Positions 899-61,055 of a stretch of 63,433 nt of DNA are shown here, in pieces (the first letter of the stretch is position 1; every line of letters starts with the position of its first letter). Under the pieces are notes generated by a model. The model was not told the origin of the DNA, did not search any database, and saw only the letters and a program-made list of their open reading frames with translations. Position numbers and translations under genes: made by a program. Source of the DNA: Neoconidiobolus thromboides FSU 785 (taxonomy: Eukaryota > Fungi > Entomophthoromycota); NCBI GenBank assembly GCA_025603075.1, contig MU626379.1, positions 1 to 63,433 on the forward strand, in the 5' to 3' direction.

Positions 899-995
899 TG
901 ATGATGTCTTTTTCTATTCAAGAATTTACAAATATTCGATTCAAATAGTGCCTAAAAAGATGGAAAAAGTGATGAAGCTAAAAAAACATCATTAT
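899..995 (-). mobile_element. MITE-like ~105-bp element, degenerate copy 1
   Basis: Matches the reverse complement of the family core (TTCAAATAGTGCCTAAAAAGATGGAAAAAGTGATGAAGCTAAAAAAACATC); termini eroded. Confidence 0.65.
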
Positions 996-1849
996 CACCC
1001 ATACACACTATACGCTGATCTGATATTGAAGTTAAAAGATACAAAACTTGAAAAAAAGACACTATAATAGATATAATAATAAGCAATAAAAGAGGATAAA
1101 AGATATTTAGATATATAAAAATTAACTACAATAATTAACTAGCTAACAAAGGTGCAAAAATTATTCAGCTTAAAAAAGGTTAGTATCAAAGGACAAGCTA
1201 AAATAAAGAAGACCAAAAGTAAGAAAAAAAGGGCTGTCTATCTCATAATATTATTAAGTAATTTCAAAATCAAAAGATAAGTGTGGGACAAACAATGGAT
1301 ACAGGGTTTAACTTGGTGGGGACAAGATTGAGATGCTAGCAAAAGAAGGAAGGCATAGTAAGTTAAAGTGAGTTAAAGAAAGAAAAGGCCTAGGTACAAT
1401 AAATGGATAAACGATTATTCTATAAAATAATGTGAATGCGAAAAACTGTTTATGGAAAGAGAAACCTATTGTAAAAGTAAGAGCTATAACTTTTAATAAA
1501 AAGAGCAAATACAATAAAGTAAGGAAAAAATCGCGTGGATATTAGAAAATTCTAAAATAAAGTAATTACTGAAGGAAATTGATTGTACTGTTTATCACCA
1601 TTAGTAGTAGTATTGTTGTTTGGTAATAAAAATTATTTTTAATATTATGATAATAAATACAATTCTATTAATAGTTTCTTTATTATAAAAAGATAGAATA
1701 TTTAATTGCTAAAGCTTGATAAATATCTCAAAATTTTATGTTAAATAAATTGTTTTCAATCAAACTATAAGCTTTTCAAAATATATATCCAAACAAGATT
1801 TAAGGCAAGAATATTAATATAACGAAAATAGGGAAAGATTAAATGTTTA

Positions 1850-1937
1850 ATATGGGAGCATTTTTTTTCATTTTTCAAGCACTATTTGAGCGGAAAAATT
1901 GTTAGTAAAATTCTTACACAAAAATACATCCCCATAT
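1850..1937 (+). mobile_element. MITE-like element, copy 2 (left-arm deletion)
   Basis: ATATGGGAGCA...AAGCACTATTTGAGCGGAAAAATTGTTAGTAAAATTCTT...ACATCCCCATAT. Confidence 0.85.
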
Positions 1938-3482
1938 GGTAAACAATATTTGAAAATATATTTAATGTACATTAAAAAATTCATGTTAAGAATAGTTAGA
2001 ATTTCGTTTTTTTAACTGAGGTTAAGCTTTGAATACTTTTAGAAAATTACTCTACTTTATATTATTATTTCAATATTAACTGCTTTAATCTTTTTTTGAT
2101 AAAAACAAGATATAGCGCTATTATAATATCGAACTTAGATTATTTGAGCTGTTTTTTCATTTTTAATTCTTATTTTTATTACAATTTATTAAGTTTCTAC
2201 AATCACCAAAAACAACCTGTATTCCATCTTTGAATTAAAAAACAACTACAATTTATATAATTGCCTTTTGATAATATCTAAAGTTAAAATTTGATACTAC
2301 GTTTTAACAAAAAATAGTGTCAATAAAGTATATCAAGATAGTAAAGATATGAAATGTGATTTTAAAATAAGATACCCGTCGAAATATAAATTTAAAGCAT
2401 GAATTTTAGTATGATCTAACTATAATAGTATCCTCGAGCTAGAAATAGTTAATTTCATTCTATCTTAATCGATTTTATCTATAAACCGTAACTTCAGATT
2501 TGCGCTTTTTTTGTATGTGAAATGATCTTGCCAAACTATATTCTTTAAATCAATCGAACTTTTTGAGTCATTAAATACACCACATATACCTTTTGGCCTG
2601 ATATACAACTTTAGGAAAACTACATTTAAACATTTTTAGAATTTTTAAGCAAATGAGAAGCAGGTAATTCTTTTATTCTCAATAATATGTGCTTATACTG
2701 TAAAGTCGATTTTTGTATATTAATTTAATACAAATAGTAGTTATATTATATTCAAACACTGCTATCAAAATAAATCATATTTTTAATAAATATTAGACCG
2801 AAGCTTAATAAATGACATTAATGTAGCATACTAAATATGGGAACATAGTTTCTATAATAAAAAACTAATAAATATAAACACTTAGTTCTCGAAGAAATAT
2901 AATAAATATAATAACTGAAGCATTATTGATTAGCAGCAAACTAGGTAACTTGTATGGCGTCAAGTACAGTGAGTAATTTAGCATAATTTTAAAGAGCCAA
3001 TTAATTTAAAATAAATTCACAGAATAGAATAGAGCTCTTAGATCTCTATTGCGACTTAACTTGCGATGAATTTTAGAATATGTTGTTTGATTTTTTAGGC
3101 CTATCTCTTGGAATTTTAGCCTGACTTTAACAAAATTTTATTCTCAAATTAATAGTTAATAAAGTCGTAATATAACTGTAACAGCTGTAAAGAATTTCAA
3201 CAGGCTGAAAGTTAAATAAAGTTAAAAAAATTCTTTAGATTATTCATTAAACTTTCGAGGAATGTAACTGCCTGTACTATTTTAGTACCTTTATGCTTAC
3301 TTTATAATAGAAGTATCTCTTAAGAATTCTATTTATTTATTCTTTAATAATTTATACTCATTATTAGCTAAAATTACTAAACTAGAATCTTATTATGATT
3401 AATACTTATTTCATATTTGGTATTTTAGTATTAAAAAAAACTATATATATGAAGCGAAAACAAGCCAACAATATACAAAAAA

Positions 3483-4601
3483 ATGTTTCTATTATTATCA
3501 CTTCTATTTTTCATCACTGACATCTTAAGTCAAGATCCTCTTGGATTGACTTACTTAGATAAGACCTGTTATAAAGTTGACTATGATATGGTTTGGTTTG
3601 AAGTTGATATCTCACCAAAATACCAACGTAATTGCCAACCACTACACCACTGGGTACCGATATTAGGAAAAGATAAGCAGTCAAAGGACTGGTATTATGG
3701 GAAGAGTTGTCACCATTGGTCCAAGTCCTGTTGCTTAACATGCCGACAATATTGTACTGATAATTTTCGTGTAAAGACCTCGGATTCAATTAGTGAAATG
3801 AAAGATTTAAATGTCATGGAAATCACATCTACAAACAAAGAGAGAGATTATTTGTATGTTGCACCTAATATTGGAAGTAAAAATTATGTTTCTGTGGATT
3901 TAAGACAAGGTTTAAGATCAATCATCATTCCTATGGACAATTTACATCCAGATGATCAAAACTATCGTCAAGTCTTTCAAATTAAAATGACTGAAAGTAT
4001 AGTCACCAAGATCTTGAATAACACCAACTTATATAAAAGGGATGCTCAAACAATTCAATCTGATGATCATGTATTAGGAGTTGACAAGATTTGTTTATTG
4101 GCTAATGATGTGTTACGAACTGCTGCTATGCAGTATGATTTTAGTAGATGTTTTCAACTAATCTCAAACAAAGATACTCGTTCTAGTTGTGGTTTTTGGG
4201 GTACTGATTATGATAATGATCGTGGCTACTACTGCGGATCAAGTAAAGTATCCAATAAAGCTACTGATTTAGCCTCTTGTCTTCGAAACTTACCTTTAAT
4301 TAATGCTTCAAAAATGGCCTATAACAATAAAGCTTTAGATGTTTTAAGAACTGCTGTAATTGCTGGGATTGAATCCATTCCGTACGCAGGGTTAGTTTTA
4401 GCTGCTACCACCAATGCCATTTTAGGTCCTACTGCAGATGAAATGATCCTAAATGAATATAAAGGAGCTCAGTTTAATGAAAAACTAATTATCCTTAATG
4501 GGGTTCGTAAACAAGTTTTAAAAGAAAGTGGTAATCTTGCAAAAGGGTATATCAAAGACAACTTCAGTGACATTATCAAATCTGTTAAAAAGATATTATA
4601 A
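3483..4601 (+). CDS. Secreted Cys-rich protein of unknown function, 372 aa, single exon
   Basis: Uninterrupted ORF with an N-terminal hydrophobic signal-like segment, 12 Cys, LYKR|DA at residues 183-188, a hydrophobic segment at ~285-316 and an amphipathic C-terminus. A near-identical paralog ends at nt 91. Confidence 0.8.
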   Translation: MFLLLSLLFFITDILSQDPLGLTYLDKTCYKVDYDMVWFEVDISPKYQRNCQPLHHWVPILGKDKQSKDWYYGKSCHHWSKSCCLTCRQYCTDNFRVKTSDSISEMKDLNVMEITSTNKERDYLYVAPNIGSKNYVSVDLRQGLRSIIIPMDNLHPDDQNYRQVFQIKMTESIVTKILNNTNLYKRDAQTIQSDDHVLGVDKICLLANDVLRTAAMQYDFSRCFQLISNKDTRSSCGFWGTDYDNDRGYYCGSSKVSNKATDLASCLRNLPLINASKMAYNNKALDVLRTAVIAGIESIPYAGLVLAATTNAILGPTADEMILNEYKGAQFNEKLIILNGVRKQVLKESGNLAKGYIKDNFSDIIKSVKKIL

Positions 4602-4978
4602 CCTTAGATTTTTAAATAAACGTACATCAAATTTACTATTATTACTATTTTTTTTACAAGTCTAAAAAAAAATTAATGATAAAAAACTATTGATACCTTC
4701 AATTATTTGATCCTGAAGATTATATTTATACAATCTAACTTTAGCATCTAATTACACTCATATTAATATGTTCATTTGTGTATATTTAATAGTTAATTAT
4801 TAACTATAGAAATAATTGTTTTTAAAACCAAATCTTTAAAAATAGTTGTCTAATAATCGAATCTACAATTTAAAATAAAATAGAGACAAAAGTTTATAAA
4901 CCCATATAATTAATAGACTCTTAAAAATATATAACTCATCAAAACATTTATTAATAAATCAAACTTGTACGATTTAAT

Positions 4979-6256
4979 TCATTCCTTTCTCTTTTCTACT
5001 TCTTTTTCCCACTGTTTATCTGCTTTACTTTGTATACTTGATACCAACTGTGCCACTCCTAATAAAAACATATTAGCTCTACACTGATTCTGCCTTTAAT
5101 ATCAAATTATATTACCTCTTCCACTATTGACACCTAGATTTAAAGAAACAGTCAAGGGGCTCATAGCCCCCATCTCCAAACCTTGTTGTAATCGATGAAC
5201 CAACTGTTGAAACGATTCACTATTTAAAACTTGTTGAATTCCTTTTTTACCTTGAGGCCTTAAACTAGCTGGAATTAAAGGTAATAATTCTAACTATCAT
5301 AAGCTATTATATTAAAATAATAACAGTTAAATTACTTTCAGTAACCCCTGGGTCGTCTAACAAATTTGATAATTGATTGGGTTGAAAGACACTGTTTAAT
5401 TGAATATTATTTGATATATCATATTTCTTTAAACTGGAGTTAACTGGATCCGAATTTGTAATAGATTCTAATAAAAGCTATTAGTAGGGGAATATATAAA
5501 TCAATTTAAAATTACGTAAATTCGTTGGAATCATATTGCTTAGCATTCTAGCTTCATTCAACCTTTTTTCTTTTTCTTCTGCAGTCTCACTAAAAAATAA
5601 AAATGCTATATAGTAATCATAGTACAAATCTTACTCATCTAATAAAGATGTAAATATTTATTAATGTGTTTTTTTTAAAGAACGTTACCTGAAATAGAAA
5701 ATAGATCCCAATCTTTAATAGGGTCATTATTTTCCCCTTTAAATAGAGCATTAAAAAAGTGAAATGCTTTTTTTAAGTTATTTTCATTTTCGTTTTTAAA
5801 CCAAAATAAACTCATTTTTCCCTCTTCATCTTTTAAATAAAAACTACTGCGACCTTCTATTGCCCTCAACTCCCCCTTTCCTTGTTTGAAATACCATCTC
5901 TGATTAAAATTAGTTATTTTATCTTTATTGCTAAGCATTGTATTTACTTCGTTTTCACTGCTATCAGTATTGGTATTATTAGAACTAATCTCCTCCCAAC
6001 TTAAACTCCATGTTAATTGAGGTTCATGACTCTTTTTTGATTAAGTTCATAATAGCCTTTAAATTAAAAAAATGTAATTTACCTTGAGAAGATAAAGATA
6101 ACTTTTAATAAATTAGTGTTAATGAAGTAAAGATCAAATTAAACAATTTTAATACCCTAATCGATTATCTGGTTCTACTAAATTACTGTCTTTAACCCTC
6201 TTCAATTTACCACAAGTTATTGGAAATGGATGTTCAAATTTTTCAATATTACTCAT
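4979..6256 (-). CDS. RPN13: Divergent Rpn13/ADRM1-like proteasome ubiquitin receptor (multi-exon)
   Basis: Spliced N-terminus CGKLKRVKDSNLVEPDNRLGYLYL...W...EGRSSFYLK...LFWFK resembles the Pru domain. C-terminus LLPLIPASLRPQGKKGIQQVLNSESFQQLVHRLQQGLEMGAMSPL...GVAQLVSSIQ resembles the UCH37-binding (DEUBAD) domain. ORF-track entry 5675..5938 is part of this gene and reads on the minus strand. Confidence 0.7.
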
Positions 6257-6473
6257 CGTTTCTAAAAGTTAAAAGAATTAAATTATTTTCAAAAAACTTA
6301 AAGTCTGTTTATAAAACTGCAATTTCTAATTACGTAGCTTTTTTGAGTTTTGAAGCAAATAATTTTAAAATAGTTAGATAAAAATTATCAAATAACATAA
6401 CTGAAGATAATATGGAATAATGCTTTATTTATTGACTAATATACAAATATACAGATAACACAGATAGTACTAA

Positions 6474-8352: not shown

Positions 8353-8455
8353 ATATGTGGATGTATTTTTTTGCTTAACAATTTTTCTATTTTTTAAGCA
8401 ATATTTGAGTGGAAAAATCGCTAGTAAATTCCTTAAATAAAGATATATCTCATAT
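8353..8455 (+). mobile_element. MITE-like element, copy 3
   Basis: ATATGTGGATGT...AAGCAATATTTGAGTGGAAAAATCGCTAGTAAA...ATCTCATAT. Confidence 0.8.
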
Positions 8456-8955
8456 GCTTGGGATTCTCAGAAAAGTAACTTAAATACTGATATAGAAAAT
8501 AGAATAATATAAAAACTCTATGATTAGACTATATTATAGCTTATCAACTATGGTATATAGAAGATAATGATATACTGAAATTAAGAATAAATGGTAAAAG
8601 AAATAGTTTATATAAAAATAATTCAAAATAAAAGTGAGAAAGTATAAATGAGACAAAGTGATCAATTATTAAATTACTATAAAGCTATAGAAACAAAGAA
8701 TGGTCCAACAAGTACATTTTCACCTTCATTATAGCTTCCAGTTAATTTCTACAATATAATTTTCCATTCAATACAAGTATATGTTTCAATATCTTAACCG
8801 AGTGTAGTAAAAAATATGTTTTTATAACAGACAAACTTTTTTACAAATTTATTATTAATAAAATCTATTTATATATAGTGCTCGTTTTCAATCACAAGAT
8901 ATATATATTATAGTATCTTTATTTTTATATTAAAGAAAAAATCATAAAAGTACTT

Positions 8956-9057
8956 TATAGAGATGCATTTTTTAGTTAAAATTTTACTAAACAATCTTCT
9001 GTTCAAACAGCACTTAAAAATGGAAAAAGTGATGAAGCCAAAAAAACATCCCCATAT
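8956..9057 (-). mobile_element. MITE-like element, copy 4
   Basis: Reverse orientation; ends TGGAAAAAGTGATGAAGCCAAAAAAACATCCCCATAT. Confidence 0.8.
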
Positions 9058-10514: not shown

Positions 10515-10641
10515 AGAATATACTTCTCTGGTTCAGAATTATAAATAAATTATAATAAATAAAATTAATTATAAAAAAACATACTTTGTTATTATCAATT
10601 TTTTCTTTATTTTCTTCATTAATCATTTCATGGACTCTTGT

Positions 10642-12356: not shown

Positions 12357-14092
<1,736 letters not shown>

Positions 14093-16433: not shown

Positions 16434-18679
16434 CTATTTAGCATGGTCTTTTTCTGTAGCTTCATTAATACTTTTTGATACTGCAAGATATTTCTCACCA
16501 TGTTCTCGAAGGTTTTTGGCGTGTGATAAATAATCTTCTGTTAACTAAAAAACAATAAATAAAATGTCAAATAAACTTAAATAAACTTACATATGAAATT
16601 TCATTCTTTTGTTCACTTGACAATAACTGTTCATTATTTTTCTTAACAATTAAATCCAAATTAGCACGAATTGCGTTAATTTGTTCCCAAAGTTCTTTTT
16701 TCATTGCATTAAATTTTTCTTCACTAAGTAATCTTTTCTCTACTTCAGCTAATCCTTTCTTTAGTTCAATTTCTTCACTACTTAATGGTTCCCCTTCACT
16801 ACTTATTTTAATCAATTCTTTAGCAAGGTTGGTAGCTCTTTGGTCGATGTCTTCTTTACGTAATAATAGTTTTTGTACCCTTAATGCTATTTTGTCATGT
16901 TGTCTTTTTTCAAGTTCTTCAATTTTTGCATAAATTCCTTCAACTGCGTTATTTTTCTTTTCAATTTGTTTCTTTATCAAATCACTTCGGTTACTTAATC
17001 CTTCATAACCTACTACTGGTACTGGTACCATACTAATATATTATTATATTGTAACTATTATAAGATATTAATAACTTACCATCTTGGATCTGGATTCTCT
17101 CTTACTGCTTTTTGATAAGCTTCATTTTTAAGATCAATTACTGGGAAATATTCAATCGTACTTGGATGTACTAAATTATAAAAGTATTTCTAATAAAAAT
17201 TTTAACATCAATAATGTCATTTTTAAGATAAAATAAAATTACCTGAAATGTATAATTATTTGAATTTGGCTGTAAGGAACTTTCTAAGGCAATATAACTT
17301 TCAACAATTGATTCATCCTTAATTTCTATGCAAAATTTTTGCTATATTAATAATTATTAAAATATATCATATTATCATCTTACCTGTAACGATCCCCGAA
17401 TTTAGCAAGGCATTCTTCATTATAAGTTCTTCAAATTTGTTCATCCCATTTGGAGCTACTTGTTGTTGATTTAAATTGTTAGCTCCCATATTACTAGCAT
17501 TCTGCCCAAGAAATCCTGTTCCAGTACTTTGTCCAAACCCAGTACTCCCTCCAAATGATTTATTTAAACTTGATCCAAAACCTGTACTACTAGTACCAGT
17601 ATTTTGTCCGAATAAACCTCCTCCAGTGCTCTGTCCAAGAGTATTGGTACTAGTGTTTTGTCCGAATAGGCTTCCACCAGTACTTTGTCCAAGAGTGTTC
17701 GTACTAGTATTTTGTCCAAGGGTATTAGTACCAGTATTTTGTCCAAACAAACCTCCTCCGGTGTTTTGTCCAAGAGTATTTGTACTGGAATTTTGTCCAA
17801 ATAAACCTCCCCCGGTGCTTTGCCCAAGTGTACCAGTACCTGTACTTTGTCCAAAAGCATTAGTAGTTCCAGTGCTAAGTGTGTTAGTACCAAAAGCGGG
17901 TTTACTAGTTAATGTTGCAGTTGCATTTCCAAATCCTGTGTTGGTATTTTGACCAAATCCTGTATTTGTAGTTTGGCCAAAACCTGTACTAGTATTGATA
18001 CCTTGCCCAAAACCTGTGCTACTAGCTTGACCAAAACCTGTACTAGTGTTAATACTTTGCCCAAAGCCTGCTCCACTACTTTGTCCAAACCCTGTTCCAG
18101 TGCTAGCAGTTTGTCCAAATCCTGTACCACTACTTTGTCCAAATCCTGTATTGGTACTCATATTTTGTCCAAATCCTGTTCCTGTACTAGCAGTTTGTCC
18201 AAATCCTGTTCCTGTATTAGTAGTTTGTCCAAATCCTGTTCCTGTATTAGTAGTTTGTCCAAATCCTGTTCCTGTATTAGCAGTTTGTCCAAATCCTGTT
18301 CCTGTATTAGCAGTTTGTCCAAATCCTGTACCACTGCTTTGTCCAAATCCAGTGCCTGTGTTAGCACTTTGTCCAAACCCTGTTCCAGTGCTAGCAGTTT
18401 GTCCAAATCCTGTACCACTACTTTGTCCAAATCCTGTATTGGTACTCGTATTTTGGCCAAATCCTGTTCCTGTACTAGCAGTTTGTCCAAATCCTGTTCC
18501 TGTATTAGTAGTTTGTCCAAATCCTGTTCCTGTATTAGCACTTTGACCAAATCCAGTATTAGCACTTTGACCAAATCCAGTATTAGCACTTTGACCAAAA
18601 CCAGAGTTATTGCCTAAAATTTCATATAATTGTTATTTTTTATATTATTTGTTATTAGTTAGCTATTACTTGAAAACAT
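16434..18679 (-). CDS. NUP57: FG-repeat nucleoporin of the Nup57/Nup54 family, multi-exon
   Basis: MFS|SNNSGFG start, a long GFGQ/GLFGQ repeat region, then YQKAVRENPDPR|W..VPVPVVGYEGLSNR (Nup54 domain) and a C-terminal coiled coil. Confidence 0.85.
17480..18610 (-). repeat. Coding tandem repeat (FG domain), mostly 24- and 30-bp units
   Basis: Repeated GTTTGTCCAAATCCTGTTCCTGTATTAGCA units (ANTGTGFGQT on the minus strand). A ~170-bp block at 18079-18250 recurs at 18367-18538. Confidence 0.95.
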
Positions 18680-21560: not shown

Positions 21561-21668
21561 TATTGGAGATGTATTTTTGTGCTTAAGAATTTTACTAACA
21601 ATCTTTCCACCCAAATAGTGCTTAAAAGATGGGAAAAAAAGTAATAAAACCAGAAAAATTATCCCCTA
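21561..21668 (-). mobile_element. MITE-like element, copy 5
   Basis: TATTGGAGATGTATTTTTGTGCTTAAGAATTTTACTAAC...CCAAATAGTGCTTAAAAGATGG...ATCCCCTA. Confidence 0.8.
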
Positions 21669-22231: not shown

Positions 22232-22334
22232 AATAGGAATGTTTTTTTGGGTTTATTGTTTTTTCTGTCTTTTAAGTACTATTTGAGTGGAAAAATTGCT
22301 AGTAAATTCTTAAATAAAAAAATACATCCCCAAA
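22232..22334 (+). mobile_element. MITE-like element, copy 6
   Basis: AATAGGAATGTTTTTTTGG...AAGTACTATTTGAGTGGAAAAATTGCTAGTAAATTCTT...ACATCCCCAAA. Confidence 0.8.
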
Positions 22335-22836: not shown

Positions 22837-22942
22837 ATATGAGAGTGTTTTTTTTGACTTCATTATTTTTTCCATTTTTAAGTGTTATTTGAGTGGAAAA
22901 TTTGTTAGTAAAATTCTTAAACACAAAAATACATCCCAATAT
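22837..22942 (+). mobile_element. MITE-like element, copy 7
   Basis: ATATGAGAGTGTTTTTTTTGACTTCATTATTTTTTCCATTTTTAAGTGTTATTTGAGTGG...ACATCCCAATAT. Confidence 0.85.
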
Positions 22943-25877: not shown

Positions 25878-25984
25878 TGATGGGGATGTATTTTTGTGTC
25901 TAACAATTTTACTAACAATTTTTCCACTTAAATAGCGCTTGGAAGGTGGAAAAAGTAATGAAGCCAAAAAAAACATCCCCAATG
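25878..25984 (-). mobile_element. MITE-like element, copy 8
   Basis: TGATGGGGATGTATTTTTGTG...AAATAGCGCTT...GTAATGAAGCCAAAAAAAACATCCCCAATG. Confidence 0.85.
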
Positions 25985-33450: not shown

Positions 33451-34275
<825 letters not shown>

Positions 34276-34494: not shown

Positions 34495-34595
34495 ACATGG
34501 GAATGTATTTTTATATTTAAGAATTTTACTAATTTTTCCACTCAAATAGTGCTTGAAAGATAGAAAAAGTGAAGCCAAAAAAAAAATCCTCATAT
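34495..34595 (-). mobile_element. MITE-like element, copy 9
   Basis: ACATGGGAATGTATTTT...TTCCACTCAAATAGTGCTTG...GAAGCCAAAAAAAAAATCCTCATAT. Confidence 0.8.
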
Positions 34596-34730
34596 GATTG
34601 ATTATTTTCAAATTGATTTAATTTTTTAACAATAACTCAACAATCTTGTTCGAGAATAGATTAGACTAAAATCAAAAAGATTATACAACTGGTATTTAGC
34701 AAAATATATGATACAATAAAAGCTTTTTAT

Positions 34731-35894
34731 TTATGCTGAACCATTGAAGAGTAAATAATTTTTGGTATCAGAATTGAATCCGGAGATAACATTTTTGGTA
34801 GAAATATTTTGAATATAGGCCTTGATTTGTGGAATGGTATATGAGCTACTAGAATACAATGTAGCTGCGAAACCGGCAACATGAGGAGTAGCCATAGAAG
34901 TTCCAGAAATGGTATTAGTACCACCATTATTCCAGGTTGATAATACATTGACACCTGGTGCAATCATATCAACACATTTTCCATAATTAGAAAATGAAGC
35001 TTTTCTATCATTTACATCGGAAGCAGCAATAGTAAAAGAAGTCTCAGCAGAAGCTGGGGATACATTACAAGCATCTGAGTTATCATTCATGGCTGCAATA
35101 ACAGATAGTACACCTTTACTGGTAGCAGCATCAACAGCATTATTAACAGAATCAGTCTTACCGCCGCCTAAACTTGCAGAAATAATATTTCCTTTAGTAC
35201 CACGAAGATCTCCAGCTACCCAGTTAAACCCAGCAATGATTGAGCTCCATGAGCCACTAGAGTTTTTGTCCAATACTTTAACAGCAACAATATTTACTTT
35301 TTTAGCTACCCCATAAGTACGCGAACCCACGGTACCAGCACAATGAGTACCATGTCCATTTTCATCACTATTAGGGCTCCCATTAACAAAATTGGCTCCC
35401 CATACGGCTCTCCCTTCAAATTCTGGATGACCAACGGCAACACCAGTGTCAACAACATAAACCACTACACCTTTGCCATCAGCTGAATAAGTATAAGTAG
35501 ACTTATTATTAAATTGTCTTTGAGAAATACGAGCTAAGCCCCAGGGAGCATTATTTTGAACAGTTTGACCATGAGCTTTACCATCACTTTCAATAAAATC
35601 AACTTCTGCTAAGTTACGCACTTTATCTAATACGTCTTTAGAGAATTTAGCATGATACATGTTTCCAATGTGTTGGTATACTTGGATAATTTCATTACCA
35701 TTGTTACGGTCGTTAAATAAAGATTTAACTGATTGAATGTGTGCGTCCAATGTAGTACGGGTACCTTTTTTTAAATTAATAATGTATTCCCCTTCTATAG
35801 TATCTTTTACAATTTTAAGTGGTGCAATGTCACTATAGACCAAAGAAAGTAAATTGGAAGCAACGAATATTAATGCTGTGATTCTCATTTTCAT
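34731..35894 (-). CDS. Secreted subtilisin (S8A, proteinase K type) with I9 propeptide, single exon
   Basis: Signal peptide, propeptide, APWGLARIS, VVDTG (Asp), NGHGTHCAG (His) and GTSMATPHVAG (Ser). AAMN replaces AAGN. Confidence 0.97.
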   Translation of the reverse strand: MKMRITALIFVASNLLSLVYSDIAPLKIVKDTIEGEYIINLKKGTRTTLDAHIQSVKSLFNDRNNGNEIIQVYQHIGNMYHAKFSKDVLDKVRNLAEVDFIESDGKAHGQTVQNNAPWGLARISQRQFNNKSTYTYSADGKGVVVYVVDTGVAVGHPEFEGRAVWGANFVNGSPNSDENGHGTHCAGTVGSRTYGVAKKVNIVAVKVLDKNSSGSWSSIIAGFNWVAGDLRGTKGNIISASLGGGKTDSVNNAVDAATSKGVLSVIAAMNDNSDACNVSPASAETSFTIAASDVNDRKASFSNYGKCVDMIAPGVNVLSTWNNGGTNTISGTSMATPHVAGFAATLYSSSSYTIPQIKAYIQNISTKNVISGFNSDTKNYLLFNGSA

Positions 35895-38022: not shown

Positions 38023-39180
38023 ATGAGAGTTATCACTATATTAGCCATTTCAAGCAGTTTAATTTCAGCAATTTTTGCCGAATTAGCTCCACTTCGTCAA
38101 GTAAAAAATAGTATACCAGACGAATATATTATCAACCTAAAAAAGGACACTCGTACCACTATTGATGCTCATTTGGATGTTGTCCAGTCTTTATTTAAAG
38201 ATCGTAGTGATAGTAACAAAATCAAAAATGTTTACAAGAACCTTGGGAAGATGTACCATGCTAAATTTACTCCAGAAATATTAGATAAAGTTAGAAACCT
38301 TCCTGATGTTGATTTTGTTGAGACTGATGGTAAAGTTAGTATACAAGCCGTTCAAACAAACGCACCATGGGGTTTAGCTCGTATTTCTCAAAGACAATTT
38401 ACTAATAAATCCACCTATACTTATAATGGAGATGGTAATGGCGTAGTAGTATATGTTGTCGATACTGGTATTGCTATTGGTCATCCAGAATTTGAAGGGA
38501 GAGCCGTATGGGGAGCCAATTTTGTTAATGGGAGCCCTAACAATGATGAAAACGGCCATGGTAGTCATTGTGCTGGCACTATAGGGTCACGCACCTATGG
38601 TGTAAGCAAAAAGGTCACAATTGTTGCCGTCAAAGTATTAGACAAAAATGGTTCAGGATCTTGGAGTGGTATTATCTCTGGCTTCAATTGGGTAGCTGGA
38701 GACCGCCGCGGTGCTAAAGGAAATATCATCTCTGCAAGTTTGGGTGGTGGTAAAATCGACTCAGTTAACAATGCTGTTGATGCTGCTACAAGTAAAGGTG
38801 TGTTATGTGTTGTAGCAGCTGGTAATGATAACAAAGATGCCTGTGATGTATCCCCAGCTTCTGCTCAAACTGCTTTTACTGTTGGTGCCTCTGATATTAA
38901 TGATAACAAAGCTTCGTTTTCGAACTATGGTCAATGTGTCGATATTATTGCACCAGGTGTCAATGTATTATCAACCTGGAATAATGGTGGTACTAATACC
39001 ATTTCTGGAACTTCTATGGCTACCCCTCACGTCGCTGGGCTCGCTGCTTACTATTATTCTCAAGGGTCATACACTATTCCACAAATTAAAGCTCAACTTC
39101 AAAACACTTCTACTAAAAATGCTATTAAGGGATTCAGTTCAACCACAAAGAACTATTTAGCATATAATAGTGTCGCATAA
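38023..39180 (+). CDS. Secreted subtilisin (S8A, proteinase K type) paralog, single exon
   Basis: Same architecture as 34731-35894, with VVDTG, NGHGSHCAG, AAGN and GTSMATPHVAG; the two genes are divergently oriented. Confidence 0.97.
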   Translation: MRVITILAISSSLISAIFAELAPLRQVKNSIPDEYIINLKKDTRTTIDAHLDVVQSLFKDRSDSNKIKNVYKNLGKMYHAKFTPEILDKVRNLPDVDFVETDGKVSIQAVQTNAPWGLARISQRQFTNKSTYTYNGDGNGVVVYVVDTGIAIGHPEFEGRAVWGANFVNGSPNNDENGHGSHCAGTIGSRTYGVSKKVTIVAVKVLDKNGSGSWSGIISGFNWVAGDRRGAKGNIISASLGGGKIDSVNNAVDAATSKGVLCVVAAGNDNKDACDVSPASAQTAFTVGASDINDNKASFSNYGQCVDIIAPGVNVLSTWNNGGTNTISGTSMATPHVAGLAAYYYSQGSYTIPQIKAQLQNTSTKNAIKGFSSTTKNYLAYNSVA

Positions 39181-39884
39181 ATAAACTTAATAAATTGTAG
39201 CACAAATCATTTTAAGATAATTTTCTTTACACTATTTTTTATCTCTTCAAAGCTTAAAAAATACTTAGTCATCAGTTCAATCAAATATATTTATAACTAA
39301 AAGTACTAACTGTAAGTAATAATAGTAACTTAAAGTATATACAAGTAACTTATTGGAATCATTGGTACAGCAATACAATATTCTTATAAGCTTTTATAAA
39401 AAAATTTCAATATCACTTCATATCTCTTTGTTTGTTGTTCATTATAGCATAAAATATAGTACTTATAGTCCATTTATATAGCATTTGTATTATAACACAT
39501 ATAGGGAGCCGAGGTATCATTTAGTTAATTATTGACTTTATTTAGCTAATGGCTCTGATATGTTTAATGCTTTGTTAATATAATACTCTAGAGCCATCAG
39601 TAATACCTTCAGTAAAACAGGTTCTTGTAGTTTTGAAGTGCTTCAACTAGACTTTTAAATCAAGTAAACAAATCCAAAAGGATGAACATCCCAGTACTAA
39701 CAATATCATACTACATGATAGTAATAGTTTATGTGTTTTAAGCTATTTTCTTAAATTTAATTCTCTTTACGTGGTTATTTAATAAAATGCTAAGATTAAA
39801 TATGATGATTGATTTTTATTTTTACCAAAAATAATTTATAAAAAAGTTTGACAAAATTTTGCATAACTCATAAAGTGAAGAAAC

Positions 39885-39991
39885 ATATGGGGGATATTTT
39901 TTTGGCTTCATTACTTTTTCGATGTTTTAAACACTATTTGAGTGAAAAAATTGTTAGTAAAATTCTTAAATACAAGAATACATCCACATAT
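39885..39991 (+). mobile_element. MITE-like element, copy 10
   Basis: ATATGGGGGATATTTTTTTGGCTTCATTACTTTTTCG...ACATCCACATAT. Confidence 0.85.
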
Positions 39992-50122: not shown

Positions 50123-50224
50123 CATATGGGGACATATTGTGTTTAAGAATTTTACCATCTTTTAAGCGCTATTTGAGCGGGAAGATTGTTAGTAAAATTC
50201 TTAAACACAATACGTCCCCATATG
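50123..50224 (+). mobile_element. MITE-like element, copy 11, with 33-bp near-perfect inverted arms
   Basis: 50123-50155 is the reverse complement of 50192-50224 with one mismatch; the centre is the family core AAGCGCTATTTGAGCGGG. Confidence 0.9.
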
Positions 50225-50299
50225 TACAACCAAAACAAGTAGATTGAATATTTGGCAATGAAAGGGTCGGATGTAAAAATTCTATTGATAAACCCATCA

Positions 50300-51110
50300 A
50301 TGTAAATTTCTCTTAACGTTGATAGTTTGAAAGAGTCATGATTGAGTTTAATAGTATTATTGGAATAGCCTAAAGAAATAGCACTACTATTCTCAAACAA
50401 CCCTAATTTTCTTTTACTATAATTGTTAAGAAAATATTTACTATAATCTAACAACTTGATACTGTGAAATATCGCTTTGTCAGTCCCGTGGTTAATTATA
50501 GCATAATAATCGCCTAAGCTGTTGTGCTCTCAAGTTCAGAGGAAACCAATCCCACGTTCTTAGTTTGATTTCATATGAGAATTTCTAGCTCCATCCCAAA
50601 GAATATTATCTTCCCATTTTAATATTTGCACTTTTCAGAGTATAGTAACTTGAGGCTTTTTAACTGAATTATTCCGATATCTCAAACATTTAATAAAGCC
50701 ACTAAGTTTTCTTAATAATATTTTACATAGGTTTTACATTAGAAGTGTCTATTCTATTTGTCTTATATAGTCTGTAGCCTATTACGTGTGCTATTCTTCA
50801 TAATCCAAGTCTACCTTAGTCACATAAACTAAGATCTTTCGACTTATAGTGTAGTCAATCAAGCAATAGCTGTTTTTGACTCCAAACACTGAGTACTAGG
50901 TTTCACAATACTCTTAAATATAGTATTTTTGATCTCTTAAATCGTGCTTTAATGGTATCTATTTTATCAATGAAAACATTATTTGAAGTATTTATTTTAA
51001 GCACTTTAATATACTTGCATTAAAATACTTAATTACATCTTTGATAGTTACACTTTGTACAGGAATTTCAATTACCTCAAGTTGATTCAAATAAATTTTA
51101 AACTCTTTCA
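50300..51110 (-). pseudogene. Possible decayed coding sequence (F-box/LRR-like remnant?)
   Basis: Minus-strand fragments such as LKEFKIYLNQLEVIEIPVQ and a ~100-aa open stretch are interrupted by many stops. The family assignment is only a weak resemblance. Confidence 0.25.
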
Positions 51111-51706
51111 ATAGCTGCTCATAGTCATAGGAACATATCCATTTGTTTTAGTTTTGGCAATTATATATTCAATATCGATATCACTAATGTCATCATTATA
51201 ATATTATCATCATTGTTATCACTAGAACAATTGCCATCGTTTTCACCATCATTCTCATGATTAATTTTGTTATCTATATTATCTTTATCATAAAATATAT
51301 TATTATACTCTATTGAAATAATACTTGAAAAGCTCAAACATTCTATACTAATATCAGTCAACTTCAAAGGACACATTAACAACCCGTGTTTTTTAATAAA
51401 CTTATTTTAATAATCATAATACTCCCCAAAGTCATAAACAAGAAAATACATCCCCAAATGCCTGTTTAGAAAGCACAACTCGAATAATTTAATTGAACCT
51501 AACGATTTGAGTACTTTTTCTAGTAAAATTTCCGATAGGGATTCGAATTAGGATAGTATTTCAACTTAATTTTAATAAAAAAAGGATCATTATTATTAAA
51601 AGTAGGGGTTTGTAATATCTAGTATAAAACTTGATAATTCGTTTTGGTATATAACGTTTTAATGCTTACCTATGCTGCTTTTTTTGCAGTTAAAAAATCT
51701 AACATG

Positions 51707-51807
51707 ATACGCGGATATTTTTTTAAGAATTTTACTAGCAAGTTTTCCACTCAAATAATGCTTAAAAGATGGAAAAAATAATGAAGCCGAAAAAAACACT
51801 CCCATAC
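51707..51807 (-). mobile_element. MITE-like element, copy 12
   Basis: GCGGATATTTTTTTAAGAATTTTACTAGC...CAAATAATGCTTAAAAGATGG...AATGAAGCCGAAAAAAACACTCCCATAC. Confidence 0.8.
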
Positions 51808-51810
51808 TAT

Positions 51811-51890
51811 CTTAAGAATTCCACTAACAATTTTTCCATTCAACAGTACTTAAAAAGTGAATAAACGAAGTTAAAAGTATCTTCCTACAT
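51811..51890 (-). mobile_element. MITE-like element, copy 13, truncated and abutting copy 12
   Basis: CTTAAGAATTCCACTAACAATTTTTCCATTCAACAGTACTTAAAAAG...GAAGTTAAAAGTATCTTCCTACAT; lacks one terminus. Confidence 0.65.
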
Positions 51891-54611: not shown

Positions 54612-54714
54612 ATATGGCAGTGTTTTTTGATTTCATTACTTTTTCCATTTTTTAGGCGCTATTTAGGTGGAAAAACTAGTAAAATTCTTAAACAAAAAAA
54701 ATACATCTCCATAT
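54612..54714 (+). mobile_element. MITE-like element, copy 14
   Basis: ATATGGCAGTGTTTTTTGATTTCATTACTTTTTCCATTTTTTAGGCGCT...ACATCTCCATAT. Confidence 0.85.
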
Positions 54715-55559
54715 ATATTAATATATCCCCTGTTTAAGCATACTTTTAATTTTTTATTATTTGAAGATTACTCAAGGCGAGGAAATATTTAAAGATATTG
54801 TACTCTAACTAGCAGTTGTCTGATGATAGTAGTTTAGAAAATAAATACAGTTTTTTCAACTTTTTACTATACTCAATAAAATATAATAGCCTCAATAGCA
54901 ATTGTTAAAATAAGTTTAATAAAAAACGAAATTTTCATTATTTTATTTATTTTTACTCTATTTGATATAGCAGTATTTAAGTAATATATTGCATGAGGGT
55001 TAAAACAAACCAATGTATATCGGAAAGCTAATAAACAGCTTTTGCTTATTTCAAGTATTAAGTAAATGTTTGAACAAGTATGCTCAAAATGGTAGATGTA
55101 ACAATAGTTAAAAAGACACTAATTTATAATAGAATTTTAGGTAGATTGTTAAAAATTATTGAAGTTTCAAGTATATTGAATTAAAAAAATTTAACATAGT
55201 AGTGTGATAAAACAAATTTATTTAATAGCGACCACAGGAGGCTTAAGTCTTCATAGAATTCAGTAAAAGATAATTAAAATCAAAACAATTTTTAATTACT
55301 ATTCATTCTTTTATGGTTTCGATTTAATTAAGTCTTTATTTTATTATTAATAAAACACTTGTCAGCTATGTTGTATCTGCATAATAGCATTTTCTTAAAG
55401 TTCAAAGCTAAAATAAAAATAAAAATAAAAATTTGAAAAAGATGAGTTTACTAAAATTGGTGTTTTGGAATATCAAAATTAAATTTAAGAATATTTAATA
55501 TTGCTTGTATTAAGATGCCAGAATAATAAATAATACGGCAAATGTGTTTTAATCATAAC

Positions 55560-55666
55560 ATATGGGGATGTTTCTTCTGATTTCATTACTTTTTCGATCT
55601 TTTAGGCGCTATTTGAGCGGAAAGATTGTTAGTAAAACTCTTAAATACAAAGATACATCCCCATAT
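55560..55666 (+). mobile_element. MITE-like element, copy 15 (near-consensus, 107 bp)
   Basis: ATATGGGGATGT...AGGCGCTATTTGAGCGGAAAG...ACATCCCCATAT; perfect 12-bp terminal inverted repeat. Confidence 0.92.
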
Positions 55667-56653
55667 ATCCATCAGAAATCAATGAAATTTTATTTTACTA
55701 TAATGTCAAAAAAAAAGATTAAATGAATACATAATCCATAGTAGCTTCGAAGCATTTTTTGCATATTTTATTTTGATATAGTTGAATGCTATATATGGGT
55801 GGTGGTAGGTTTAGAACTTTGGTTAAAACTAGGAATTAAATTTTCCATTTTTGTCCATCTTTTATATAATGTAAATTTTGAAAAAAGATATTGAACATTG
55901 TATAAATAAACATTAGATATATGTAATTTTACTTGAGCAAAAAAGCAATTAATTTCTAGTATCTTGTGCTTGATCCACAATTTTTACTAAAAATTCATAA
56001 TGGACGGAAATTGAACTGAGCTTTTAAACTAATTCATATTAATGGGTTATAACAGGAGACATAAAAAATATTAGTAATAAGGCCAAAATTAAGGGATGAA
56101 AAGAAAAAGATGACTAAAATAATTCATTTAAATAACATCACTTAGTCACTGATAGCTTAATTAAGTAATCCGAAATACTGAAACCTTATATCTTTATTCT
56201 TAATATTAATTTATTGTTATTACTTTAGTGATAAAACCCTCTAAAAGGCGATATCAAAAATAAAACTAATAAATTAATAATTATAAAATTTCATTTTTTT
56301 CAAGTTTATAATTAGGAAAGTGGCATTTATTATATGAACATGCATAAAAGGAACAAATAAAAACAAAAATAGTTAAAATAATAATGCCAGCATAATTTGA
56401 TATTTATGATTTAAAAAGCAATACAAAATTAATAGGATTATAGAATAATGTGAATTTATAACAGTGGTTTTTAATCCATAAAAGGATACAAATAAAATAA
56501 AAAACAAATATTTTCTAAATAAAATAAGATTTTAATTAAACAGGTCAATAAATGGATTTCATTGAATAGTTTATGATAAGTGATTTTTATTTACAGGTAG
56601 TAGTGAAAAGTATATAAACAAGAGAAAGATAAATGTAATCCCTAACTTAAAAA

Positions 56654-58333
56654 ATGTTGAAGTTTATTTATTTCGCTCTAATTTTACTAACAAACTCAAT
56701 AGTGACAACCACTTTGGTTGATAAGCCATTAAATGTGTTAATTTTCTGTGATATAAGTAGTAGATCCCATGTAAAATCATTCTTTGAGATATTTAAAGTA
56801 TTGCAGCAGAAAGGTCATGAATTCACTTTTGTATCTTCCTCAGATAATGCCCATTACAACAAAGGTTATAATGTAAGCTCAATAATATTTGATACCGCTC
56901 CACCAGACACTGTAAACCTACATAGTTTATATAGTACCGAGATACCTATAAGTTATGCTGGTATACATAAAGCTTTATTTCCAGATAGAATGGTAGATTT
57001 ATTTACTTATACCTATGAAGCCAATTATCCTAAATTAAACCAACTAGTAAAAGAAAATAAATATGATTTAATGATATGTGATTTTATGTCAAATCCATGT
57101 CAAGATGTAGCACAAAGTAATAGCTTACCTCTAATTATCGGGATTCAATCCTTAGATTTGTTGATTCCGATGACACCTGCATTTAAGATATCGACCACTT
57201 GGTATGCCCCACTTACGACCGAAGGTATGGACTTTTTTACAAGATATTATTATAAAGTTATCCATGCTTTTGAAAGGACAAAAAGGGGGTTGAATTATGT
57301 TAAAATGATTAAAGAGCTAAGAAAGAAATATAATGTTGTTGGTGCTAAGGGATATGCAGGAAATTTTAATTATGGATTAGGACTTGCCAATACTTTCTTT
57401 GGATTTGAATTGGCACAAGAGTTACCACCTATTATTAAAACTATAGGGCCTATTTTGCCAAAATCAGGTAACAAAGTTAGTTCAGAAATTCAAAGTTTTA
57501 TAGATGAGCATAAATCGATTCTTTATATTGGGTATGGATCTTTAAGTATAATAGATAAACATACTATGAGTTTATTATTACAAAAAGTTTTAACATTAAT
57601 TGACTCCAAAGTTATTGATGGTGCTATATGGGGATTAGTACGCTCAGTGGAATCTTTAGACTTACTACCAGAAGATATAAGCTATAATGGCAAAAAAGTA
57701 AAGACATCTGAAATAATCAAAGGTAAACATGAGCATATCAGATTATTAAAATGGGCTCCACAATCAGAAATATTGCAACATGAAAATGTGAAACTATTTA
57801 TTACTCATTCAGGCTTAGAAAGTGTATTTGAAGCCATTGATGCTATGACTCCAATGATTTGTATGCCAACTTTTGGAGACCAGGCACGTAATGCAGCTAA
57901 GGTAGAATCTATTGGGATAGGTAAACATATATCGTTTGAACAGATTGAGGATGGGCTGATACCTGCAATTACTGAAATGATCCAAGACAAAAATCAAAGT
58001 GTTCAAATGAATCTAGAAAGAATGAAATTGTTAGCTAATGGTAGCGATTTACGAATCCAATTAGGAGCTAAAGTCATTGAGGATTTTGCTAAAACTGCTA
58101 AAATTTGTAGGAAATTGAAACCATATGATCCTACCTCTAATTTACCTCCATGTGAAATTGAACATTTGGTTCCAGTTAGTAATAGAATGAACTTCATAAA
58201 GTTATACTCTTTGGATCTTATCGGGTTGAATTTCTTAGCTGCCTTTTTGTTTATTTATGGGTTTTATCGGGCTGTCAAAGCTATTTTAGTAAGGATTTTC
58301 AAACCTTCTATTAAACATAAAAAGGTGGAATAA
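56654..58333 (+). CDS. UDP-glycosyltransferase (GT1) with signal peptide and C-terminal TM anchor, single exon
   Basis: N-terminal SRSH (catalytic His position), signature WAPQSEILQHENVKLFITHSGLESVFEA...PTFGDQ, C-terminal TM helix and KKVE* end. Confidence 0.92.
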   Translation: MLKFIYFALILLTNSIVTTTLVDKPLNVLIFCDISSRSHVKSFFEIFKVLQQKGHEFTFVSSSDNAHYNKGYNVSSIIFDTAPPDTVNLHSLYSTEIPISYAGIHKALFPDRMVDLFTYTYEANYPKLNQLVKENKYDLMICDFMSNPCQDVAQSNSLPLIIGIQSLDLLIPMTPAFKISTTWYAPLTTEGMDFFTRYYYKVIHAFERTKRGLNYVKMIKELRKKYNVVGAKGYAGNFNYGLGLANTFFGFELAQELPPIIKTIGPILPKSGNKVSSEIQSFIDEHKSILYIGYGSLSIIDKHTMSLLLQKVLTLIDSKVIDGAIWGLVRSVESLDLLPEDISYNGKKVKTSEIIKGKHEHIRLLKWAPQSEILQHENVKLFITHSGLESVFEAIDAMTPMICMPTFGDQARNAAKVESIGIGKHISFEQIEDGLIPAITEMIQDKNQSVQMNLERMKLLANGSDLRIQLGAKVIEDFAKTAKICRKLKPYDPTSNLPPCEIEHLVPVSNRMNFIKLYSLDLIGLNFLAAFLFIYGFYRAVKAILVRIFKPSIKHKKVE

Positions 58334-58578
58334 AAAATAAAAAAGATTTATTAAACAAAGTATTCAATTTATTATTTATTTTATAAAAGTAATAATGTTA
58401 TTAACACTCTTTTATTAATCTGATAAGTACCAATCTTTACAAAACTATTTTTATTTTATTAACTTCATTCATTGATTTCATTATTATATATGCTTATTTT
58501 ATTGGCTATTGCTCTCCCTTAATTGGCAATCGAGATCATATAATAAAATTTTAACCTAAGCGATTTTTTATTTTTAAA

Positions 58579-60873
58579 ATGCCATTGACACGAAAATTAG
58601 CAGAATTATATGGAGTGAGTAGTTCAGTAGCTAACATTGCTAGAATAGCGATCAACCATACATTGATTGATTTGAAACTCAAATATAAGACTTCTGGATT
58701 ACCTAAGTTTCAAGAGGAAGGGAAGTGGAATCAAGCTGAGTTCAAAGATGTAGGAGTTAAGTTTACAGAATTAGATAGAGGATTCAACAATTCAATAAAT
58801 CAAATGGGCAATAATGACAGCTTAAATGAGAAAGAGCGCGGTTTAGCAAGAGATTTAGAAGAAAATGAAATTTATCCTGATTTAGGTGAGAAGCAAGAGT
58901 ATATTAAAAAACAAAATGAAGAAAATGAAATGAGGATCTTGAATGAAAAAAATGAGATTGAAAAAATAGACAATAAGCTGAATCATGGCATAGAATTACC
59001 AAATACTGAAGAGAAAGTTACGGAATTGCCTAAAAGGATTTCAGAAACTACAGATGATTTAGTTGTGGTTCCAAAATCGGATCTAAATTCAGTTCCCAAT
59101 TCTGAAATCAAAGAAAATAGCCCTGAAATTAAAGGAAGTGATTCAGAAATTTTATATAATAGAAATAGAGAATATACCGTTGAGACTCAATACCAGGTAA
59201 TTTAAATTAGAGTTCTTGTAAATAAATTGCACAATTTTATTTCTAAACATTTATTAAAAAAATGATCAGGATGATAGTAGGCCAAAAGAATACTTAGAGG
59301 TTAATGTTCCAACCACCAAATTTGGAAGATTTTTACAATATGGAGGTTAGCTATTGTATATTTAAAAATAAAAATATATAACAGATAGTTAGGCTTAGCA
59401 GTATCAATGGGATCAGGGATGTTAGGAGAGGCGTTTAAGCGTAGTGTAGGGCTTTCAAAATCAGAATTAGGAGGTAGCTATTATGGAATTCAATTTATAA
59501 AAATAATATAATCTTTAGAATCGGCATTATGGAGTGAAGGTAATGTAAAGAGGCTAGTGAATCGACTATCTAAGATGCGTGGAGCTGCTCAAAAATTAGG
59601 CCAAGTTTTAGCGATTCAAGATGCTAATGTATTGCCCCCTCAAATTGAGAAAATTTTATTTCAAATTCAACACTCAGGTGCTTATATGCCACAAAAGCAA
59701 CTGAAGGTAACATATAATTATATTTTTAATACACGAATATCTATAACATAATAGAGAGTATTAAGTGAAGAGATTGGAGAAGACTGGCAGAACAAATTGA
59801 TGGATTTTGAAATGACACCTTTCGCTGCAGCTTCAATTGGACAAGTTCATTGGGCAAATATAAAGGATTCTTCTGAACAAATAAGATCAGCAGCAGTGAA
59901 AGTTCAATACCCTGGGGTTGCACAATCAATCGATAGTGATCTAGATAGTTTAAAGCTACTTTTATTAGCATCAAAAGTATTGCCTCGTGGTCTATACTTA
60001 GATAAAACTATCCAAGTAACTAGAATGGAGTTGAAGTGGGAAACTGATTACTTGAGAGAAGCAAAATATGCTGAAATGTTTAAAGAGGCTTTAAAGGATA
60101 GTCCTGAATATCATGTACCTGCCATTTATAGAGAGCTTACAACAAGTAACGTATTAACTATGGAACGTTTACCTGGAGTACCTCTCAATCAAATATTAGA
60201 TGCAAAGCAAGAAGTTAGGGATTGGGTAATAAATAATATAGAAACAGAGATTGATAATAATTTTATTTATAGATTGCTACTAAAATTATGGAATTATGCT
60301 TAAGAGAGTTATTTGAATTTAAATTTATGCAAACAGACCCTAATTGGACAAATTTCTTATATGACCCAGTTGACCACAAAGTAAAAAATTTAATGATAAA
60401 CCGATATTTAATTAAATAACCACTTTGACTAGATTGGCTTATTAGATTTCGGGGCTACAAGAGAATTTGATGATGCTTTCCTTTCAAATTATTTAGGCGT
60501 GTTAAAAGCAGCAGCAGAAAATGATCGTGAAGGTTGCTTGGACTATTCATATCGTTTAGGCTATTTAACTGGGGATGAGCATAGCACTATGAAGGAAGCA
60601 CATATTAATTCAATATTAACATTAGCAGAACCCTTCCAAGTGAAAGAAGATGCGGAGTATGATTTTTCAGATCAAACTATTACTAAAAGAGTCAGAGATC
60701 TTATTCCAGTTATGCTAAACCTGAGACTCACACCACCACCTGAGCAAACCTATTCACTACATAGAAAGTTATCTGGTGCCTTTTTATTATGCTCAAGGTT
60801 AAGAGCTAAAGTCAAGTGTTCTCAATTGTTTTATGACACTATAGGAAAATTTAAAATGGAGGGGAAGTTATAA
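58579..60873 (+). CDS. COQ8: COQ8/ABC1 (ADCK3-like) atypical kinase, multi-exon
   Basis: [57 protein letters not shown] and [23 protein letters not shown]. Confidence 0.95.
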
Positions 60874-60949
60874 ATAAAACAGTCAATACTTTTCTAAATT
60901 TGATAGTTTAGTTCATATACTTATGTACAATTTCTTATAGAATTTTAAG

Positions 60950-61055
60950 ATATGGGGATGTTTCTTTTGATTTCATTACTTTTCCATTTTTTAAGCACTA
61001 TTTGAGCGGAAAATTTGTTAGTAAAATTCTTCAATACAAAAATACATCCCCATAT
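60950..61055 (+). mobile_element. MITE-like element, copy 16 (near-consensus, 106 bp)
   Basis: ATATGGGGATGTTTCTTTTGATTTCATTAC...AAGCACTATTTGAGCGG...ACATCCCCATAT; perfect 12-bp terminal inverted repeat, 76 bp after the COQ8 stop. Confidence 0.92.

Follow-up and report, generated by a model that had tools for sequence, protein, structure and literature searches.

A 99-bp hairpin-forming repeat in the genome of Neoconidiobolus thromboides is probably a miniature derivative of a Sola2-type DNA transposon

The first 63,433 nucleotides of contig MU626379.1 from the early-diverging fungus Neoconidiobolus thromboides FSU 785 (GenBank assembly GCA_025603075.1), hereafter the window, contain sixteen copies of a short, hairpin-forming repeat that recurs thousands of times in the genome. 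I consider it highly likely that this repeat is a 99-bp miniature inverted-repeat transposable element (MITE), that is, a non-coding deletion derivative which keeps the two ends, of approximately 45-50 bp each, of a Sola2-type cut-and-paste transposon. MITEs in general are short (less than about 800 bp), non-coding and bounded by terminal inverted repeats. The initial annotation of the window had already read the repeats as MITE-like, and this reading holds, as shortness, lack of coding capacity, inverted termini, a target duplication of fixed length and a high copy number are all found.

Results

The window was searched with an nhmmer profile built from two good copies, with one iteration. 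The profile gives 16 matches and no others (E-values from 1.6e-27 to 1.6e-6), nine on the plus strand and seven on the minus strand. All 16 copies that had been annotated, in both orientations, are thus recovered, with starts shifted by 4 flanking bases. The resulting density of one copy per 3.96 kb agrees with the earlier estimate of about one per 4 kb, and the same eight copies are counted as having ATAT on both sides. The terminal motif GGGGATGT occurs 11 times in the window, against 0.48 occurrences expected from shuffled sequence. None of the 16 copies overlaps an open reading frame (ORF) of at least 100 amino acids, in keeping with their annotated placement outside coding sequence; they are located in spacer DNA with a local GC content between 0.18 and 0.28.

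Throughout the genome assembly (24.6 Mb in 799 contigs), the 12-mer ATATGGGGATGT is found 2,450 times, compared with three times for its reversed control, and a conserved internal 18-mer has 5,169 matches when up to 2 mismatches are allowed, compared with 25 for the control. As the 18-mer recovers 11 of the 16 copies in the window, this count and the density in the window lead to an estimate of approximately 5,000-7,000 copies, or about 2-3% of the genome. The consensus is 99 bp long, with the ends GGGGATGT...ACATCCCC, and contains no ORF; the copies range from 91 to 102 bp. Among 86 unique full-length copies, a sample that is biased towards the best BLAST matches (the copies in the window are older), the mean identity to it is 90.5%. 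Four 99-bp copies, located on separate contigs amid unrelated flanks, share 100% identity (L013:1507-1605, L018:1505-1603, L019:1505-1603 and L025:1505-1603), which points to a late or recent burst, even though the sampled copies of the transposase described below are dead.

The flanks of the same 86 copies define the target site. ATAT is present on both sides of 61 copies, and six others have identical direct flanks that differ from ATAT (ATTT three times; ATCA, AAAT and ACTT once each), which brings the matched flanks to 67 of the 86; most of the remaining pairs mismatch at one position. Flanks that are each other's reverse complement were not found in any of the 86 copies; the flank must therefore be a direct repeat that adjoins the element and does not belong to its inverted repeat. 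Paralogous transposon copies within the same genome provided the empty sites. When MITEs nested in copies of a larger transposon are compared with the uninterrupted paralogues, the left and right flanks almost always share exactly 4 bp of the empty sequence; one nested MITE, for example, is flanked by AAAT where six paralogues carry a single AAAT, and several cases with ATAT are alike. Exceptions are confined to an (AT)n run, in which the register is ambiguous. The target duplication of the MITE is thus 4 bp long, AWWT-like and mostly ATAT. The initial annotation had left the choice between ATAT and a TA or AT duplication within a preferred ATAT site; the direct flanks and the paralogous empty sites settle for the 4-bp duplication, and the TA duplication has to be given up. 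A strict TA target is excluded, since the central dinucleotides TT, AA, CT and TC occur in matched flanks.

Neighbouring MITEs that are separated by exactly 4 bp, usually ATAT, make up ten pairs among 185 copies (e.g. L007 1403-1603, L010 1404-1603, L058 1116-1316, L057 1274-1473, and a pair in L003). This is the outcome expected from a second insertion into the duplicated ATAT of the first copy, and these ten abutting pairs indicate that new insertions favour the duplicated target beside an existing copy.

A transposase is absent from the window according to tblastn, as had been stated before, and all-against-all blastn and tblastx comparisons of 193 kb did not find one either, yielding only a solo long terminal repeat (LTR) family and gene paralogues. 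Among the first 100 listed sites of the 12-mer terminus, nine regions that could have held longer elements bounded by it turned out to be only clusters of separate MITEs. A search by motif fared differently. Query motifs were taken from two published Sola2 transposases, Sola2_DFa-2 and Sola2_PPa-1 (PMC3627910), which were compared by eye and have several blocks in common, among them YHGKSxxDxHF. A degenerate DNA pattern for HGKSxxDxHF (up to 2 mismatches) has 67 matches in the genome, against one for the control, and the near-identical DNA at these sites indicates a repeat family. The corresponding pattern for DFKEN is not enriched in the genome (15 matches, control 17), because the fungal copies read DFKQN. 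With a stop-free stretch of 398 amino acids (L062:772-1965) as query against the genome, 468 candidates were obtained at first look, together with 130 matches at E <= 1e-10, and nearly all contain internal stops or cover the query only partially. The sampled loci are heavily interrupted by MITE insertions. One copy (L061, approximately 1077-1176) has a run of N inside the transposase region, perhaps an assembly gap.

The fungal copies and their metagenomic and Smittium homologues share, in translation and alignment, the blocks RSTF, TDxCxxC, DFK[E/Q]N, L[N/S]HxS, WxDxGxHF[R/K]S and HGKSIVDGHF. Their order is identical in Sola2_DFa-2 and Sola2_PPa-1, and the distances from DFKxN to LNH, from there to WxD, and on to the last D measure 54, 30 and 43 residues in the fungus, versus 55, 32 and 43 in Sola2_DFa-2. 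With all five signature blocks at Sola2 spacing, the transposase family appears to be of the Sola2 type. Published Sola2 elements make 4-bp AT-rich duplications of the form AWWT, such as ATAT, AAAT and ATTT (PMC3627910). No Pfam model matches the transposase proteins, a word-indexed search with a profile of the homologues does not reach the dictyostelid Sola2 proteins, and the named homologues are only hypothetical proteins of N. thromboides and Smittium angustum. The domain DUF7869, to which a protein language-model atlas pointed, was rejected, as none of the aligned proteins is matched by its Pfam model.

The Sola2-like element is approximately 2,364-2,430 bp long, with the ends GGGG[T/C]TGTC...GACA[A/T]CCCC. 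Its 3' end, GACA[A/T]CCCC, was set where the similarity between copies stops; ATAT follows it in nine of the 13 loci that show it (two of which are the same copies fetched twice), and AAAT, TTAT, ACAT or AATA in the others. At the 5' end, ATAT is followed by GG[A/G]G[T/C]TGTCC. The flanks at the ends of the 2.4-kb elements include ATAT, AAAT and ACAT. A copy on contig 28 has ends of the type GGAGATGTC, which are identical to the MITE tip GGGGATGT at seven of eight positions. The initial annotation had proposed looking for longer elements with the same terminal inverted repeats around a DDE transposase; a family of about 2.4 kb with matching GGGGnTGT tips does exist, but all examined copies are broken.

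A resemblance of the two elements beyond the tips is suggested, though not overwhelmingly. The left arm of the MITE, aligned in register from the tip with the reverse-complemented 3' end of the larger element, is identical at 29 of 40 positions (z of 2.6-3.7 against shuffles), including a block of approximately 24 nucleotides around TTCATTA. The right arm resembles the 5' end of the element with a z of 2.8, including GTTT[A/C]AGAAT...TAC. The MITE and the 2.4-kb family share GGGGnTGT tips, ATAT flanks and subterminal blocks, while the identity past the first 8 bp is modest.

With respect to the hairpin, six copies from the window were folded. The two best have z-scores of -4.8 and -4.4 against shuffled sequence, one has -1.2, and three are near 0. 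The long imperfect hairpin that had been described for the whole element thus applies to well-preserved copies and not to decayed ones, which have z-scores of about 0. Across 82 copies, 84.7% of 36 arm pairs are complementary. However, RNAalifold predicts no consensus pairs for these 82 copies, and in the hairpin of the best copy the share of cells that pair (84.7%) compares with 84.9% when the partners are shuffled among sequences. Compensatory changes in that hairpin are fewer than expected (24 vs. 40), the covariation score equals the shuffled value, and Rfam has no match to the MITE. Since covariation is absent and the fold is lost in older copies, the hairpin is not selected; it is the inherited symmetry of inverted ends, with no sign of selection.

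Copies and other features in the window

The individual copies are listed in Table 1. Four of the 16 are damaged: the one at 903 by decay of its ends, the one at 1854 by an internal deletion, the one at 50127 by replacement of its left arm, and the one at 51812 by loss of a terminus. In copy 11, the left arm repeats the right arm in reverse complement, giving a near-perfect palindrome of 28 bp, and the internal 18-mer is matched on both strands, at 50142 and 50188. This suggests either hairpin-templated repair or a subfamily with two right ends.

Table 1. Positions and state of the MITE copies in the window
Copy	Position	Strand	nhmmer match start	Ends and flanks	Profile match and fold
1	903-990	-	903	both termini decayed, flanks not ATAT	profile positions 4-96, E 2.3e-13
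2	1854-1933	+	1853	deletion of ~18 bp inside left arm, ATAT both sides	profile positions 15-99, E 2.2e-17
3	8357-8451	+	8359	termini mutated (GTGGATGT...), ATAT both sides	E 8.2e-14
4	8960-9053	-	8961	one end ACATCCCC then ATAT, other end decayed	E 1.6e-15
5	21565-21666	-	21565	full length (102 bp), flanks TATT, TACT	profile positions 1-99, E 1.1e-22
6	22236-22331	+	22236	flanks AATA, AAAC	E 2.5e-19
7	22841-22938	+	22843	ATAT both sides	E 4.7e-23
8	25882-25980	-	25882	best-preserved in the window, perfect GGGGATGT...ACATCCCC ends	E 1.6e-27; hairpin z -4.41
9	34499-34591	-	34499	flanks ACAT, ATAT	E 7.1e-19
10	39889-39987	+	39890	ATAT both sides	E 2e-22
11	50127-50219	+	50137	both arms of right-arm type, ATAT both sides	profile positions 14-99
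12	51711-51803	-	51714	one terminus decayed, other ACACTCCC then ATAC	E 1.6e-20
13	51812-51884	-	51812	truncated, diverged, one terminus lost, 8 bp from copy 12	profile positions 4-81, E 1.6e-6
14	54616-54710	+	54616	ATAT both sides	E 1.7e-19
15	55564-55662	+	55564	full length (99 bp), perfect ends, ATAT both sides	E 3.3e-27; hairpin z -4.76
16	60954-61051	+	60954	full length (98 bp), perfect ends, ATAT both sides	E 5.9e-26

The window is AT-rich (20-35% GC), and its genes, which are fungal, include a myosin-chitin synthase with a DEK_C domain, two subtilases and a UDP-glycosyltransferase. Copy 9 is located 141 bp past the stop of the subtilase ORF 34731-35894 (minus strand). The two subtilases (Peptidase_S8 and Inhibitor_I9, window 34704-35825 and 38086-39207) are inverted duplicates, 2.3 kb apart and 77% identical over 1,122 nt, and each of the two genes has a MITE downstream.

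At 51436-51459, a lone sequence that resembles the right end of the MITE, AAAATACATCCCC, is followed by AAAT, without a MITE body. It was considered as the end of an autonomous element (51436-51455) and rejected, as the adjoining 548 bp on its inner side occur nowhere else in the genome, and as a neighbouring frame of 82 amino acids matches a family of ORFs of about 450 amino acids without a Pfam domain; it could be a small piece of a MITE or else belong to the end of another element. A solo LTR of approximately 445 bp (50464-50907, TGTGAAAT...ATTTCACA) is flanked by a 4-bp duplication, ATAC, and at least six further copies with 79-94% identity were found (L004, L009 twice, L010, L021, L032 and L038), several of them with 4-bp duplications. 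Between this LTR and a MITE, a frame of 82 amino acids on the minus strand (50221-50466) is 31-40% identical to at least 16 places in the genome, mostly in uninterrupted frames of 420-492 amino acids, four of which lie together on contig 9. This family has no match in Pfam, and the 82-amino-acid frame probably represents the pseudogene remnant of one of its uncharacterised genes.

Elsewhere, a long, coding-like array of 24-, 27- and 30-nt repeats (17400-18650, minus strand; the unit on the plus strand is roughly TTGTCCAAATCCTGT) would encode short units containing glycine and phenylalanine, and may belong to a nucleoporin-like protein with phenylalanine-glycine repeats. Finally, a direct repeat of 167 nt (84%, at 1-167 and 4511-4677) brackets an ORF at 3483-4601 (372 amino acids, no Pfam domain), which has a 76%-identical paralogue on contig 3 (window 3332-4600 versus L036 4858-6137).

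Discussion

The simplest reading of these similarities is that the MITE would consist of the two joined ends of one member of the Sola2-like family, with the exact parent subfamily outside the sample. A Sola2 transposase, of the DDD type and supplied in trans, would bind the terminal and subterminal bases of the MITE and excise it. Re-insertion would then take place at a 4-nt staggered cut, and repair of the gaps would make the duplication. The copy number could have been raised by donor-site repair that uses the sister chromatid as template, or by transposition during replication, and the potential to form a hairpin would be a by-product of joining two inverted ends.

Several observations weigh against this derivation. 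The subterminal similarity is modest and lies in AT-rich (T-rich) sequence, with p of approximately 0.001-0.02 per comparison and some pairings that are not significant. In the major transposon subfamily, position 5 of the ends and the positions from 9 onwards do not match the MITE, and in view of both points the sampled family may be a cousin of the true parent of the MITE. The assignment to Sola2 was made by the order and spacing of motifs against two published sequences, together with the target duplication. None of the 104 scored candidates contains an intact transposase, and the sole stop-free stretch, that of 398 amino acids at L062:772-1965, carries N where the first catalytic D would be expected. 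Moreover, the perfect-ended MITE copy at 25882-25980 has unmatched flanks, TGAT and AATG.

Because all examined transposase copies are broken, the Sola2-like family looks largely extinct, and I infer that most or all of its transposase genes are inactive at present. That the MITE family is still mobile, through ongoing mobilisation in trans by some rare Sola2 transposase, intact or domesticated, with a preference for targets beside its own ends, is doubtful; this idea leans on the four identical MITEs at unrelated loci and on the ten abutting pairs among 185 copies.

Alternatively, the MITE could have been moved by another superfamily that duplicates 4 bp (piggyBac, Kolobok, Ginger, Sola1/3 or an undescribed one), with a likeness to Sola2-like ends that arose by chance. 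The identity between MITE and transposon is firm only for GGGGnTGT and the ATAT flank, the subterminal similarity is modest, and the language-model search pointed to DUF7869 clusters. However, both arms of the MITE resemble the cognate Sola2-like ends in register, the rare GGGG tip and the target are common to both elements, and MITEs are very often located inside and beside Sola2-like elements. The published Sola2 targets are the same ATAT, AAAT and ATTT (PMC3627910), whereas piggyBac and Kolobok duplicate TTAA, which does not occur among the flanks of the 86 copies. In the light of this evidence, mobilisation by another superfamily seems quite improbable.

It is more improbable still that the repeat is a functional structured element, such as a non-coding RNA gene, a terminator, an insulator or a replication-related hairpin, which was spread or kept for its fold. 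Complementarity does run across the whole element, with z-scores of -4.4 to -4.8 for the best copies, and all copies in the window are intergenic. Yet the fold has neither an Rfam match nor an RNAalifold structure in 82 copies, its covariation is at the shuffled level, and older copies lose it. Insertion by transposition is evident from the target duplications and from the empty sites in paralogues, and the copies occur in both orientations irrespective of the neighbouring genes.

Fungal MITEs derived from Tc1/mariner elements, which are Stowaway-like and include mimp of Fusarium and Guest of Neurospora, are approximately 100-200 bp long, intergenic, present in high copy number and hairpin-forming, with a TA duplication. 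The N. thromboides MITE is likewise short, non-coding and hairpin-forming, but it has a 4-bp duplication that includes sites without TA, and GGGG tips. That it should be a Stowaway-like element after all, inserted at TA within a preferred ATAT and ending in T-GGGG...CCCC-A, is the least credible of the explanations: Tc1/mariner is the commonest origin of fungal MITEs (PMC5751038), ATAT contains TA, and at ATAT sites the 2-bp and 4-bp models predict identical filled and empty sequences, but the matched flanks ATTT, AAAT, ACTT and ATCA have no central TA, ATCA on both sides needs a direct repeat of the first and last flank bases that the 2-bp model does not predict, and the related transposase carries Sola2 motifs and no Tc1/mariner (or other) Pfam domain. 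The initial annotation had already called the GGGG termini unlike classic Tc1/mariner ends, and these four duplications likewise speak against that superfamily.

The derivation from a Sola2-type transposon can be set against what has been described of this superfamily. The dictyostelid Sola2 elements (Bao, Jurka and Kapitonov 2009; DFa-1/2/3 and PPa-1/4/5; PMC3627910) share with the fungal element a 4-bp AT-rich duplication, short imperfect terminal inverted repeats, and the motifs DFK[E/Q]N, WxDxxxHF[K/R]S and HGKSxxDxHF at like spacing. They are 10-15 kb long, whereas the fungal element measures about 2.4 kb, and the fungal copies seen do not contain the Fanzor passenger gene. The fungal tips, GGGG...CCCC, are unlike the dictyostelid Sola2 ends (PMC3627910, Additional file 11), and the fungal element, unlike its dictyostelid relatives, has probably spawned a 99-bp MITE in thousands of copies. 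Sola2-type MITE families have been catalogued in insects in iMITEdb (PMC5199201); these too are short and non-autonomous and were assigned by duplication and terminal repeats, whereas the host here is an early-diverging fungus. In a 2017 survey of cut-and-paste transposons in fungi, with N. thromboides outside its range of species, Sola2 appeared once, in Aspergillus flavus (PMC5751038), and a published repeat analysis of N. thromboides gives 13.5% repeats and mentions neither Sola nor MITEs (PMC10515909). No paper connecting Sola2 with the Entomophthorales was found in the literature searched. With the insect MITEs of Sola2 type on record (PMC5199201), the kind of element is a known one, to which N. 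thromboides adds a new and, for fungi, rare member; no prior description of this MITE was found in the searchable literature.

In N. thromboides, a single, probably Sola2-derived MITE that makes up approximately 2-3% of a compact 24.6-Mb genome, with a copy about every 4 kb, is a major shaper of intergenic DNA. Among cut-and-paste superfamilies, Sola2 has received some of the least study, with hardly any reports from fungi, and its transposition is not known to have been studied biochemically. In annotation, the MITE accounts for thousands of intergenic repeats with a hairpin fold which might otherwise be taken for regulatory sequences or genes for RNAs. Its many nested insertions, of use in the study of transposons, fix the 4-bp target precisely, with no new mechanism involved. 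If the MITE family were still mobile, N. thromboides would be a natural system for Sola2 transposition.

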